Assembly: GCA_965112735.1 (NCBI GenBank)
Contig: OZ218962.1
Location: 372,001 to 436,000, forward strand
Reading direction: 5' to 3'
DNA from: Phaeosaccion multiseriatum
Taxonomy: Eukaryota > Protista > Ochrophyta, other classes
Length of the DNA: 64,000 bases
The notes beneath the pieces are model-generated. The model was given only the letters and a program-made list of their open reading frames with translations, ran no database searches and was not told where the DNA came from. A program made the translations under genes and the position numbers. Below are positions 30,462 to 37,166 of this stretch, piece by piece; position 1 is the stretch's first letter, and each line of letters starts with the position of its first letter.

Positions 30462-33400
30462 ATGAACTCTCCTCGGCCCAAGACCACGGGCAAGATCATC
30501 GACCTCATCAACGCTCGCGAGGCGGAGAGCTTCTCAGAGCCCTTCGTCAGCCTGGAGTACTTCCCGCCTCGCACGGAAGCGGTGAGTGAGTCGAGTGACT
30601 AGTGACGAGGCAGAGGGAAGTGAAGGGTAGCGATAGTAGCAACAGCACCGTAGCTACGGGGAAGGGGAGGGGCCAGAAGTGAGCTGCTTAGCTGGCTGCC
30701 AGTAGCACGCACTGCGTGGAAATGGCCACATCATGGTGGGAGGGAGCAGCAATCAGGTCAAGCAGACGATGGACGATGTGCCGTGTTCGATCCCTCTGCA
30801 CCTCCTGCCCTCGGACGTCCCCTCTCGCGCACCCATCTCCCTTATGCCCACCCCATTCGTGGAAGAACAAGAAGAACAAGCAGAGTCCTAAGCGCCCCCT
30901 CTCCCTTGCGCCTCTGTCCGTCCTCCTCTCCTCCACCCTCTCCTCTCGACAAACCACCTCTCGACCACTGCTATCCACACAACCACACACCCAACCATCC
31001 ACTGCCACACGCAGGGAGTGCGCAACCTGAAGGAGCGTCTGCAGCGCATGAAGCTGTGCGACCCCATGTTCGTTGACTTTACCTGGGGTGCAGGGGGTAG
31101 CACCTCGGACCTGACGCTGGACCTGACCCTCGCCTGCAAGGACGACTTCAACCTCAACCCGAACATGCACCTCACCTGCACCAACATGCCCGCGGAGAAG
31201 ATCAGCAACGCCCTCGAGGTGGGTAGGGGCGGGAGGGAGGGAGGGGGATGGACAAGGCTTGACCTCCACACCAGGGGCGCAAGACTGGCGGCATGAAAGT
31301 GATGTGCTGTGAACAGATTCAATAACTCCCTCAGTCCCTCACTCCCTCTCCCTATCCCTCCCTCCCTCTCGCCCCACCCGGCTCCCTCCCTCCCCTCCTA
31401 ACAACCTCACCACCATCCTCTGACCTCTCAGGAGTGCCGTGCCCGTGGCGTGAAGAACATCGTGGCGCTGCGTGGCGACGCCCCTAACGAGGAGTCTGAG
31501 TGGAAGGCCACTGAGGGAGGTGAGTGGGTGGGCGTATGGATTCGTGTAACTTACGTAAGGAGACGTGTCAGGGACGTCTCAGGCCGTGCAGATGAAACCG
31601 CCCCCTCGGGCGGCTGACCCTCTTGTCCCTTCCTCTCTTCCCACCCCTCCTTACCCTCCGTTACGTACGTTCCTGCGTATGTCATTACGTACGTCCAATC
31701 AGGCCTGTCCTGCGCTCTGGACCTTGTCAAGTACATTAGGCTTCATCATGGGGACTTCTTCGGCATCTCCGTGGCAGGGTATCCCGAGGGGCACCCCGAC
31801 AGGATCAAGGTGAGGGGCACGCACGCACACACACACACACACAGAAACAGATAGAGATAGAGGCCCACGCTGGGAGACACACACACACAGAGACAGCGCC
31901 ACACAGAGAGACAGAGAGAGACTAAAGGGGGAACAGAGAGGCTTGGGAGACCCGTAGAGACAATGGGGAGAAAGAGACACACCGAACAGACATGCACACG
32001 TTAACGCAAGCGACCCCCCATCCCCATCTCTTGTACACGTTAACGTGTATGCCCCTTAACGCGTATGTCCCCTCCCTGCAGGAGGTCCCCGGGGGCTACG
32101 AGAGCTTGTCCGAGAGCGAGAAGGGCCGCTGCAGACAGGTGGTGGAGGAGGACGGGCGCGAGGTGACGTATGTTTGCGACGACGCCAACTTCGAGATCGA
32201 GCTCGACTATCTCAAGGAGAAGGTGGACGCTGGCTCTGACCTCATCCTCACACAGGTACGTCAGATTACGCCATAATTCAGTTTCCTTCTTTGGCCTTCC
32301 GATACGTGCGGGTTGTGTATGTTTCTGTAACATTCCGTCGTTCTCTTCCCACAACGTTGGGCCTCCCCCTTTTCTCGCTGTCTCACAAAATCCCCCTGCT
32401 GCACACGTGGCCACACGTAATCACCACGAAGTATGAACCCCACGCACAACACCCACTCACACCCAAAGAATGACCATGCCCGTATGATCACACACAGATG
32501 TTCTTCGACCCCGAGGTGTACGGTCACTTCGTGAAGGCGTGCCGTGCCCACGGAATCATGGTGCCCATCCTGCCCGGCCTCATGTGCATCAACGCCTACC
32601 ACGGATTCAAGCGCATGAGCGGCTTCTGCAAGACCAGGTCAGTCGGGGCGAGGGACAGGGGCGGTACTGTGTGGATGGTTGAGTGGATCGATGGGGGTGG
32701 GTGGATGGAGGGAGGCAAAGGAAGCACTCAACAGGACGTACTGAAGGATTCAGTACACCCCCTCTCGTCGTGTGGAGATGCTGCAACGGCCCCTTCTATA
32801 TGCCTATATGCCTCTAGCTGGCGTCTATCTGCCTCTAGCTGGCGTCGTGCCCACCGCTGAGCTGAAGCGATTGTTGAGTTGTCTTTTTATGAATTCGGGT
32901 GTTGAGCTTCTACCTCACCAACCTTTCTAACCCTCTCCTCCTGTATCTCAACACTCCACTGCTGCTCTTGTTTGGGGGTGCAGGGTGCCCAAGGAGGTGG
33001 AGGCCCGACTTGAGGCCATCAAGGATGACGAGGCCGCCGTCAAGGTATGATCTTTTGCAGGGGAGGGGGGGATGGAACTAAATGGTACTGGACGGAGCTG
33101 AGAGAAAGGGAGAGGACGGAGCAGGAAATGGCGGTGGATGGAGCGCAGAGAGAGGGAGAGGAGGGAGCAGGAAATGGCACTGGATGGAGCGCAGGGTAGG
33201 GCAGGAGACAGCCCAGAGAGAGAGGGATAGAAAGGGGACGGGCGGCAATTTGGCTGTGCCACTCTCCTCTCCCTCTTCTTCTCGTCCACCCCAGACTCAA
33301 ACTCACACACACACACACACACACACACACACACACACACACACACCACTTCAACATGCCATCCACTCGCTTCCTCAGGCCTACGGTGTGGAGTACGGTG

Positions 33401-33504
33401 CCGCAACGTGCCGCCGCTTGGCTGAGTTGGGTGCCCCTGGATACCATTTCTACACCCTTAACCTCGAGAAGGTCACAGTTGGCATCCTCAAAGAACTAGG
33501 TCTT
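30462..33504 (+). other. MTHFR: MTHFR (MetF-type catalytic TIM barrel) portion of the fusion gene, without the eukaryotic SAM-binding regulatory domain
   Basis: The domain ends at ...[20 protein letters not shown] in exon 8 with no stop codon. Confidence 0.9.
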
Positions 33505-36500: not shown

Positions 36501-37166
36501 GTGACTTGTGATGTCATGAGAGTGTGGGTGCGTGTATGTGTTGTGTGTGTGTGTGTGTGTGTGTGTGTGTGTGTGTGTGCTGGCGAGGACTTTTATCCCC
36601 CAACCAACCCAACCCCCCCTACCCCCCCCGCCCCCGCCCCAGGTCGACATGTTCACCTTCCCCAGCGGCAAGTCCATCATCCTCCTTGCGGAGGGCCGCC
36701 TCCTCAACCTTGCTTGCGCCACCGGGCACCCTTCCTTCGTGATGAGCGCGTCCTTCACCAACCAGACGCTGGCCCAGATCGAGCTGTGGAGGGAGAGGCA
36801 CAGCGGCAAGTACGCCACGGGAAGGGTCTACGTGCTGCCCAAGGTTAGTGGGTGTGTTGGTGATACATGGGTGGGAGTAAGTCAGTGAGTGGGTAAGTGG
36901 AGGCATGATTGCCCTCCTCTCACCCCCCACCCCCCACCCACTCTCTCCGTCACCCATTCAAGCGCTCACTCACCCGTCTTCTCCCCATCCCTCCCTCCCT
37001 ACACGCCTCTACTCTTTCTCACAAATGGCAGTTCCTGGACGAGAAGGTGGCCCGGCTGCACCTGTCCTCCCTCGGAGTGCGCCTCACCACACTCAGGCCA
37101 GAGCAGGCCGAGTACATTAATGTGAGTCAGGAGGGACCCTTCAAGCCTGAGGCCTACCGCTACTAG
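30462..37166 (+). CDS. MTHFR::AHCY: Fusion protein, ~853 aa: methylenetetrahydrofolate reductase catalytic domain plus full-length S-adenosylhomocysteine hydrolase. Exons 30462-30581, 31015-31218, 31432-31519, 31703-31809, 32082-32255, 32498-32637, 32984-33044, 33379-33678, 34411-34512, 34806-34992, 35252-35523, 35757-36011, 36209-36424, 36643-36843 and 37032-37166
   Basis: MTHFR motifs: [58 protein letters not shown] and HFYTLN. SAHH motifs: [87 protein letters not shown] and YRY*. All 14 introns are GT-AG and phase-consistent, and the spliced length is 2562 nt. Confidence 0.92.
33616..37166 (+). other. AHCY: Adenosylhomocysteinase (SAHH) portion of the fusion gene, of the type carrying the ~40-aa catalytic-domain insertion
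   Basis: Begins at DFKVAD in exon 8. Catalytic and NAD-binding motifs are intact, and the insertion HEGVKAE...[10 protein letters not shown] is present. Confidence 0.93.
33862..34400. repeat. (CCCAA)n pentanucleotide satellite in intron 8 of MTHFR::SAHH
   Basis: Directly visible. It generates the spurious PTQPN and GLGWV ORFs in the ORF track. Confidence 0.95.

Follow-up and report, generated by a model that had tools for sequence, protein, structure and literature searches.

The window, a stretch of 64,000 nucleotides from Phaeosaccion multiseriatum, very probably holds one gene for a single cytosolic polypeptide of 853 aa, in which a short MTHFR is tethered by a flexible linker to a complete SAHH, an architecture shared across marine algae. 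MTHFR provides 5-methyl-THF and SAHH cleaves SAH to homocysteine and adenosine, while 5-methyl-THF and homocysteine are the substrates used by methionine synthase. According to a homology-guided splice model, the MTHFR-SAHH gene extends over 30462-37166 of the forward strand and is divided into 15 exons, with all introns being of the GT-AG type (Table 1). The spliced coding sequence of 2562 nt forms one open reading frame, which runs from the start codon at 30462 to the stop at 37164-37166 and encodes 853 aa plus stop with a predicted mass of 93.5 kDa. Start and stop of this model are the same outer coordinates that had been given in the initial annotation. Exon 1 is predicted to leave no room for a targeting peptide. 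Intron 8 has also been considered as coding, as it is stop-free and 3n long, and has been rejected: it consists of a T-poor pentanucleotide microsatellite which is open in 3/3 forward frames and absent from every homologue. Its lack of stop codons in all three forward frames is due to the scarcity of T.

The fusion is most directly seen in exon 8, which provides 100 stop-free residues in one frame. When this exon is scanned alone with Pfam, residues 2-41 match positions 248-287 of the 287 positions of PF02219 (E 9.6e-6, above the curated cut-off) and residues 80-100 match positions 1-21 of PF05221 AdoHcyase (E 4e-4), with 38 residues separating the two matches. The acceptor (cag, then exonic G, at 33378/33379) and the donor (exonic GAG, then gtgagg, at 33678/33679) fall where they had been placed by the first reading of the DNA, and its central claim of an in-frame MTHFR-SAHH fusion with the junction inside one exon is borne out by the matches to both families in one stop-free frame.

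Table 1. Features of the MTHFR-SAHH gene, in positions of the window.
Feature	Position	Strand	Support
Whole coding span	30462..37166	+	Model collinear with P0004, P0163, P0001, Prymnesium
Exon 1: start codon, MTHFR N-terminus	30462..30581	+	First ATG of stop-free stretch; homologues start at same place
Exon 2, MTHFR, including NMHLTCTN	31015..31218	+	PF02219 positions 25-92, E 2.9e-17
Exon 3, MTHFR, NIVALRGD	31432..31519	+	tblastn and splice model
Exon 4, MTHFR, VAGYPEGHP	31703..31809	+	tblastn and splice model
Exon 5, MTHFR	32082..32255	+	PF02219 positions 153-179; tblastn and splice model
Exon 6, MTHFR, MFFD.. PILPGLMCI	32498..32637	+	PF02219 positions 180-224, E 1.5e-11
Exon 7, MTHFR	32984..33044	+	Splice model
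Exon 8, junction exon: MTHFR end 33382-33501, linker 33502-33615, SAHH start 33616-33678	33379..33678	+	Pfam; DNA contigs identical
Linker, 38 aa, with conserved short-MTHFR tail motif	33502..33615	+	Motif shared with stand-alone brown-algal MTHFRs and an MTHFR-cupin protein
Intron 8, 732 nt; an (ACCCA)n microsatellite makes up most of it (33860-34384)	33679..34410	+	
Exon 9, SAHH, GSLHMTVQ	34411..34512	+	tblastn and splice model
Exon 10, SAHH	34806..34992	+	PF05221 positions 55-115, E 4.9e-30
Exon 11, SAHH, IVDDGGD, then plant-type insertion	35252..35523	+	PF05221 positions 119-196, E 2e-20
Exon 12, SAHH, NAD site GFGDVGKG	35757..36011	+	PF00670 positions 1-61, E 9e-31
Exon 13, SAHH NAD domain, TTTGN	36209..36424	+	PF00670 positions 62-134, E 1.8e-26
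Exon 14, SAHH	36643..36843	+	PF00670 and PF05221 matches
Exon 15, SAHH C-terminal tail and stop	37032..37166	+	Sequence and splice model

The same architecture has been found well beyond the window. Within the retrieved set, 47 proteins (the window's included) show the end motif of MTHFR and, behind it in the same chain, the start motif of SAHH, and the window protein is collinear end to end with about 45 single-chain MTHFR-SAHH proteins at 57-71% identity. Its closest full-length relatives are metagenomic (P0004 from a TARA scaffold, 832 aa; P0163, 827 aa; P0001, 756 aa; P0003, 655 aa; 64-71% identity, with 67% over 836 aa for P0004) and differ from it in having few or no introns; P0001, P0163 and P0003 belong to the SAHH sub-clade of the window, P0004 stands beside it, and P0001 shares the TAQM(I/L)GMIKS tail. 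Haptophyte fusions (Chrysochromulina tobinii KOO31098.1, 857 aa; Prymnesium parvum KAL1515438.1, 882 aa, and its MMETSP0008 peptide CAMPEP_0113240374; KAL3930465.1 from a Prymnesium sp. MAG) show the same order of PF02219, short linker and PF05221/PF00670 and have a weak linker motif, A-Q-M-x-x-x-x-G, in common with the window, the Prymnesium proteins being collinear with it over about 850 aa at about 58% identity. In contrast to these haptophyte-borne proteins, both halves of the window protein group with ochrophyte stramenopile sequences in the trees. Intronless single ORFs of the fusion are present on a TARA contig (L001, 832 aa), a JGI contig (L002, 756 aa) and in the C. tobinii genome (L007, 6001-8574, 857 aa), whereas the window gene has 14 introns, and two further contigs with the fusion (L003 and L004) are mRNA-sized. 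Transcript-derived peptides have been obtained from P. parvum MMETSP0008 (852 aa, crossing the MTHFR-SAHH junction), from a second MMETSP data set (855 aa) and from Tara metatranscriptome unigenes, and an ESM Atlas search with P0004 has returned generic SAHH clusters only. On the basis of these sequences, the architecture occurs in haptophytes, ochrophyte-like stramenopiles and further marine protists. For P. multiseriatum, run searches gave DNA-like runs and two RNA runs containing 5% of the words, the RNA matches to 31350-33880 lying in low-complexity stretches only, and the case for translation as a single chain in this organism is a comparative one.

Regarding the linker, its about 38 residues most plausibly represent the native C-terminal tail of the short MTHFR family, as the motif "AQMIGMIKS" also ends stand-alone brown-algal MTHFRs with no SAHH behind. 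Across the 47 proteins, SAHH starts 28-61 aa behind the HFYTLN motif, except in the long-form P0169 with 333 aa. In the AF2 model of P0004, two confident domains are connected by a linker (335-355) with pLDDT below 50, at a pTM of 0.52; in this model and in that of the Ectocarpus MTHFR, the tail motif is rendered as coil of low confidence that contains one helical turn at most, which gives no ground for proposing that it docks on a domain. The initial annotation had suggested that the linker Met codons at 33562 (Met360 of the 853-aa model) and 33571 (Met363) could start a stand-alone SAHH. Both fall inside the conserved MTHFR tail motif, which is present also where no SAHH follows, and they are thus no sign of an internal start. 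It is nevertheless conceivable, if unlikely, that the continuous ORF yields mainly two proteins, with SAHH starting from Met360/Met363 after transcription initiation in intron 7 or exon 8 and MTHFR alone resulting from alternative splicing or polyadenylation. In exon 8, no ATG precedes that of Met360, which is located 17 residues ahead of FKVADISL and would make a plausible SAHH N-terminus. Furthermore, the linker of the P. parvum genomic gene is interrupted by a 67-nt GC-AG intron; its retention would shift the frame after MTHFR, and the transcriptome peptide fits its removal. The occurrence of the Met-containing motif in stand-alone MTHFRs and in an MTHFR-cupin protein argues against separate products, as do the open and in-frame linkers of ~45 diverged homologues, several of which contain no Met, and the stand-alone SAHH of P. 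parvum, which is encoded by a separate gene on another contig and has its own N-terminus, MPTLKNVEASGD. The 183 nt at the beginning of exon 8 are free of ATG; as only ~2 would be expected by chance, this is not informative.

Both halves of the predicted single chain are intact, as had been stated initially for their catalytic motifs, and would each be an active enzyme. The MTHFR half (about aa 1-340) matches PF02219 on successive exons at positions 25-92, 153-179, 180-224 and 248-287, and P0004, collinear with the spliced protein, matches the same family at E 1.6e-99. It has kept 61 of the 62 near-invariant columns (at least 95% invariant across 26 family members), the sole change, G128E, being located in a loop, and it is presumably an FAD-type, short MTHFR that reduces 5,10-methylene-THF to 5-methyl-THF. 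In the SAHH half (about aa 378-853), exons 8-14 match PF05221 at positions 1-21, 55-115, 119-196, 197-226 and 221-256 and PF00670 at 1-162 in the usual nested order, and of 264 columns with an invariance of at least 97% across 102 stand-alone SAHHs, 256 have been retained. The eight changes are Y379F, I437M, V472I, I517V, Y584I, K698L, I700V and G766A, of which Y584I, K698L and G766A are non-conservative. The motifs that we take to be catalytic or NAD-binding are all intact, GFGDVGKG and the C-terminal FKPEAYRY among them. Among solved structures, the SAHH half of P0004 is closest to the plant-type enzyme of Lupinus luteus (PDB 3ond, E 4e-222, full length), likewise a long SAHH that contains the insertion segment; solved SAHHs have a free N-terminus, and no solved chain holds both MTHFR and SAHH domains. 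The SAHH half accordingly reads as a complete NAD-dependent enzyme of the plant/bacterial type, which would hydrolyse SAH to homocysteine and adenosine.

Since those named haptophytes that carry the fusion encode a stand-alone SAHH as well (P. parvum KAL1528003.1), the main SAHH of the cell may be another than the fused copy. This coexistence could be taken further, in that a single chain is made but its SAHH half is a diverged paralogue, serving mainly as an SAH/adenosine-binding regulatory or scaffold module for MTHFR while the stand-alone enzyme performs the bulk of hydrolysis. In line with such a role, the SAHH branches of the window (0.42) and its nearest fused relatives (0.27, 0.29 and 0.22) are long compared to the median of 0.12, three invariant columns are changed non-conservatively, and the short MTHFR family is devoid of the usual SAM/SAH sensor. 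We regard it as very unlikely in view of the high retention of invariant columns and of all catalytic and NAD-binding motifs, and of the haptophyte fused SAHH halves, which have short branches and are nearly identical to stand-alone copies; moreover, the adenosine kinase found inserted in some fusions (see below) would be of no use if SAHH did not release adenosine.

Logan contigs from two DNA runs of P. multiseriatum have been compared with the window over 31350-33880, beside the intron 8 repeat. They cover 31925-33287 and 33356-33880 with zero differing letters and zero gaps, and consequently neither a stop codon nor a misjoin exists in 33505-33615, the segment singled out for this check in the initial annotation. 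As the runs probably stem from the source sample of the assembly, this agreement does not constitute independent support. That neighbouring genes have been joined by misassembly or by a wrong frame has next to no probability, as nothing but this dependence of the DNA runs speaks for it, while the junction lies inside one exon, without differences in read-derived contigs, and recurs in independent genomes, metagenomes and transcriptomes.

For the single-chain fusion, the relation of SAHH to the SAM-binding regulatory domain differs from what had been supposed. Canonical eukaryotic MTHFRs (human 6fcx, yeast, Chaetomium 8uy2) have a homologous catalytic barrel followed by the SAM-binding PF21895, whereas in the window the barrel is followed by SAHH: PF21895 gave no match on any exon scanned with Pfam, exon 8 giving PF02219 and PF05221 only, and the model leaves no coding sequence of the 853-aa protein unassigned. 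The nearest MTHFR relatives are the stand-alone short enzymes of Ectocarpus siliculosus (399 aa) and Ascophyllum nodosum (346 aa), which share the barrel of the window protein and the C-terminal tail found in its linker, lack the regulatory domain and stop after this tail. Therefore, SAHH has been added to an already short MTHFR, and the earlier proposal that it replaces the regulatory domain is not supported. Indeed, two metatranscriptomic proteins, P0169 and P0384 (86% identical over 292 aa), combine MTHFR, PF21895 and SAHH in one protein, so that PF21895 and SAHH are not alternatives.

A single origin of all fusions has been rejected. The AU test rejects a tree in which the SAHH-fused short MTHFRs form one clade apart from the stand-alone, the tandem and the cupin-fused forms (p 0.00016, for a group that was named after the tree had been seen), and the SAHH halves of fusions cluster by host lineage. 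Hence, the architecture has been gained or lost more than once, and the fusion "family" is best understood from these trees as a shared architecture and not as common descent of all members. Gene adjacency in Ectocarpus has been considered as a fusion precursor and dismissed, as its MTHFR is flanked by a histidine phosphatase and HSP70, the latter and not SAHH being the next gene.

SAHH also occurs with other partners, always C-terminal after a short linker as in the window. In P. parvum KAL1524917.1 and P0481, the N-terminal enzyme is a phosphoglycerate kinase, and in P0161 and P0162 (1170 aa) an extra enzyme that matches PDB adenosine kinase (E 3e-113) is inserted between MTHFR and SAHH. If each fused half keeps its own activity, the window protein would supply both substrates of methionine synthase. 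The fusion would hold MTHFR and SAHH to a 1:1 ratio within a single particle, for which the SAHH tetramer is the most likely core, and remethylation capacity would grow with SAH hydrolysis, pulling the thermodynamically unfavourable SAHH reaction forward. By the same logic, the adenosine kinase insert would clear the other SAHH product, and this variant supports a putative SAH-clearing, methyl-regenerating role. Since both products go to a third enzyme, direct channelling between the fused enzymes is not expected, and a kinetic advantage of the fusion is something we can only infer. A wider and rather unlikely extension would be that SAHH, closing on SAH or adenosine, acts as the missing allosteric sensor of short MTHFR, and that its tetramer serves as a recurrent scaffold to which marine algae would attach MTHFR, adenosine kinase and even PGK to form a methyl-cycle particle, adapted to the heavy methylation load that osmolytes such as betaines and DMSP impose on them, with the SDMT-like methyltransferase in the same module.

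Among marine primary producers, haptophytes and ochrophytes are of major importance, and their need for methylation is very high (DMSP, betaines, B12-dependent methionine synthesis). The fusion joins the removal of SAH, a methylation inhibitor, to the commitment of folate one-carbon units to methionine and would thereby be a control point of the methyl cycle. Its natural variants (adenosine kinase insert, with or without the SAM-sensing domain, PGK-SAHH) may help, like a "Rosetta stone", to tell which steps of the methyl cycle have to be coupled, and provide ready-made constructs for biochemistry. The initial impression that the fusion might be undescribed stands as far as the searchable literature is concerned, in which, subscription journals lying outside its coverage, no description or functional study has been found; it does not stand for the databases, as the architecture is already deposited in NCBI and UniProt (C. 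tobinii KOO31098.1 / A0A0M0JY96; P. parvum KAL1515438.1 / A0AB34J6W0). These entries are named just "adenosylhomocysteinase" or "hypothetical protein", and automatic annotation as adenosylhomocysteinase only would lead to MTHFR being scored as missing, or the fusion being counted as SAHH alone, in pathway and metatranscriptome studies. Next to the MTHFR-SAHH gene, a gene for an SDMT-like methyltransferase shares with it a divergent promoter of 500 bp.

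The fusion gene resolves into 15 exons (2562 nt, all introns GT-AG) with a single open reading frame of 853 residues, predicted at 93.5 kDa and pI 5.4, according to a splice model for which tblastn with full-length homologues was followed by scoring every GT/GC-AG combination close to the HSP ends. This model has returned the same outer coordinates and junction exon as the initial annotation, and the in-frame junction inside one exon that had been proposed there is borne out by Pfam matches to both families in a stop-free frame. With exon 8 searched alone, its residues 2-41 correspond to the last 40 positions of PF02219, the MTHFR barrel (E 9.6e-6, above the curated cut-off), and its residues 80-100 to positions 1-21 of PF05221 (AdoHcyase; E 4e-4), leaving 38 residues between the end of MTHFR and the start of SAHH. 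Exon by exon, the matches are colinear, with PF02219 in exons 2, 5 and 6, both families in exon 8, and PF05221 together with PF00670 in exons 10-14. Because the barrel begins right at the N-terminus and leaves no space for a targeting peptide, the protein is presumably cytosolic.

Features of the fusion locus in the window and of fusion genes on other contigs
Feature	Position	Strand	Remarks
SAM-dependent methyltransferase	28985-29962	-	single exon, 325 aa; head-to-head, 500 bp upstream of fusion gene
Fusion gene ORF	ATG 30462 to stop 37164-37166	+	homology-guided splice model
Exon 8, junction exon	33379-33678	+	100 stop-free codons; acceptor cag/G, donor GAG/gtgagg
Intron 8	33679-34410	+	732 nt, multiple of 3
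888-aa ORF	38001-40667	-	low-complexity Gly, Glu, Ser runs; downstream, opposite strand to fusion gene
Fusion ORF, TARA metagenome scaffold	L001 1271-3769		uninterrupted, 832 aa
Fusion ORF, JGI contig with eukaryotic neighbours	L002 8001-10271		uninterrupted
Fusion ORF, Chrysochromulina tobinii genome (haptophyte in culture)	L007 6001-8574		uninterrupted, 857 aa, KOO31098.1
Linker intron, Prymnesium parvum	L006 about 8500-8570 (CM083865.1)		GC-AG, 67 nt

Neither a stop codon nor a misassembly has been found in 33505-33615. Searches of sequencing runs turned up no RNA data set for this organism. Its runs X3-X8 (one sample) include intron sequence of the locus and are therefore DNA runs, probably the assembly's own source; read-derived contigs were compared over 31350-33880, and those of X3 and X5 span 31925-33287 and 33356-33880 with zero differing letters and zero gaps. 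Intron 8 consists mostly of an (ACCCA)n pentanucleotide array of ~104 copies at 33860-34384 and, being T-poor, is stop-free in all three forward frames, which creates a misleading 504-aa ORF (33082-34596) running through it. Introns 7 and 13 contain (CA)21 and (GT)29 arrays.

The catalytic motifs of both enzymes had been described as intact, and the conservation of their residues agrees with this. The MTHFR half retains 61 of 62 near-invariant columns defined by 26 MTHFR-family sequences, with G128E as the sole change, and the SAHH half 256 of 264 defined by 102 stand-alone SAHHs, the exceptions being five conservative changes and the non-conservative Y584I, K698L and G766A at otherwise invariant columns. 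All motifs that hold the catalytic, FAD- or NAD-binding residues of the two enzymes have been found. The metagenomic homologue P0004 matches plant-type SAHH (PDB 3ond, E 4e-222) and MTHFR structures; both domains occur together in no solved chain. Its AF2 model (pTM 0.52) shows two confident domains joined by a linker with pLDDT <50 at residues 335-355. In this model the tether is flexible, and the position of the two domains relative to each other is not fixed.

The architecture is not confined to the window. With exon 8 as query, a word-indexed search retrieved other predicted proteins carrying PF02219 and PF05221/PF00670 in one chain, and the homologue set was enlarged by an exhaustive HMMER search, two further searches and cluster look-ups. 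In 47 retrieved proteins, the window's included, a single chain carries the MTHFR C-terminal motif and, after it, that of the SAHH N-terminus, with a spacing of 28-61 residues in all except the long-form P0169 (333 residues). The window protein is collinear from end to end with the metagenomic relatives P0001 (71% identity), P0004 (67% over 836 aa) and P0163 (64%) as well as with the Prymnesium protein (58%). Transcript-level fusions in relatives comprise a P. parvum MMETSP0008 peptide of 852 aa, another MMETSP peptide of 855 aa, several Tara metatranscriptome unigenes and two mRNA-sized contigs (L003, L004). The P. parvum gene KAL1515438.1 carries an intron inside the linker, and the transcriptome peptide is its exact spliced product with this intron removed; if the intron were retained, everything behind MTHFR would fall out of frame, a possible switch between fused and MTHFR-only products. 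Since the linker is open and in frame in many diverged lineages and has a weakly conserved core (A-Q/K-x-M-...-G), selection acts on it as coding sequence.

The linker is the native tail of a short MTHFR family: in Ectocarpus and Ascophyllum, MTHFRs that stand alone (346-399 aa, PF02219 only) carry the same tail after the barrel and then end, and the motif also precedes the cupin domain of an MTHFR-Cupin_5 (DUF985) protein, P0017. AF2 models this tail in the Ectocarpus MTHFR at low confidence and gives the motif a single helical turn. The family occurs also as tandem MTHFR-MTHFR proteins (P0011, P0012). The suggestion that SAHH has replaced the regulatory domain finds no support, as the short MTHFRs lack the SAM-binding PF21895 even when standing alone, and a long form combining barrel, PF21895 and SAHH exists in the Tara unigenes P0169 and P0384, which are 86% identical over 292 residues, from the last part of the regulatory domain through the linker into the beginning of SAHH. 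A separate initiation of SAHH at the linker methionines had also been considered. Their codons at 33562 and 33571 are indeed present, but they belong to the conserved MTHFR tail, which occurs also where no SAHH follows; an SAHH start inside the fusion gene, though conceivable, has no sign in its favour. The stand-alone SAHH of P. parvum, KAL1528003.1, is a separate gene on another contig with its own N-terminus, MPTLKNVEASGD..., and resembles stand-alone SAHHs in Emiliania, Scyphosphaera and Chrysochromulina rotalis.

At the locus, one open reading frame encodes two intact enzymes joined by a flexible tether, in a conserved architecture. Hydrolysis of SAH is reversible and favours synthesis, going forward only with removal of adenosine and homocysteine; the latter is remethylated by methionine synthase with the 5-methyl-THF made by MTHFR. 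The fusion would keep the clearance of SAH and the supply of methyl groups at a 1:1 ratio within a single particle, probably built on the SAHH tetramer. The strongest support for such a coupling comes from a triple fusion of MTHFR, adenosine kinase and SAHH (P0161 and P0162, JGI metagenome contigs, 1170 aa), because adenosine kinase takes away the other SAHH product. Its full-length kinase (PDB 9fw6, E 3e-113) sits between the barrel and the tail motif (..KMMAQGTLMGAG..) preceding SAHH, and the SAHH halves group with stramenopiles. Allosteric coupling of the fused enzymes through SAH is possible.

The SAHH tree places the window together with P0001, P0163 and the metagenomic P0003 among the SAHHs of stramenopiles (ochrophytes), close to Phaeomonas and Tribonema (clade support 96). 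The window's SAHH (exons 9-15) has a long end branch, 0.42 versus a median of 0.12, and the fused proteins nearest to it evolve fast as well. This long branch in the window sub-clade, together with stand-alone SAHHs in P. parvum, suggests that the fused copy may be a specialised enzyme and not the housekeeping SAHH. Haptophytes also possess phosphoglycerate kinase (PGK)-SAHH fusions (P0431, P. parvum KAL1524917.1, 926 aa; P0481, ENA contigs, 723 aa), and in Prymnesium, as in Chrysochromulina, the SAHH parts of MTHFR fusions, of PGK fusions and of stand-alone genes are mutual closest relatives. Such clustering by genus and not by architecture suggests gene conversion, or repeated fusion or capture of SAHH as C-terminal partner. 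The haptophyte fusions come together as one clade in the MTHFR tree (support 100), where the window and P0001 adjoin brown-algal stand-alone enzymes with weak support; no SAHH was found among the neighbours of the Ectocarpus MTHFR. As one clade uniting the SAHH-fused short MTHFRs is rejected by the AU test (p 0.00016, for a group defined after seeing the tree), the fusion architecture has been gained or lost at least twice.

The fusion had been noted as possibly undescribed, and full-text searching outside the subscription literature yielded no paper describing or studying it; the architecture is, however, already catalogued in NCBI and UniProt, where C. tobinii KOO31098.1 is annotated as 's-adenosyl homocysteine hydrolase' and P. 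parvum A0AB34J6W0 as 'Adenosylhomocysteinase'. The window contributes an intron-rich member, of ochrophyte-like lineage, to this database-level kind of fusion, a family that is widespread ecologically and apparently uncharacterised. The upstream methyltransferase matches Pfam Methyltransf_11/CMAS and, over its full length, PDB 2o57, a 'putative sarcosine dimethylglycine methyltransferase' (E 5e-48). Its pairing with the fusion gene was not seen on the homologous contigs L001, L002, L006 and L007, which lend no support to a conserved module; in the window, it places a SAM consumer beside an SAH-clearing gene.
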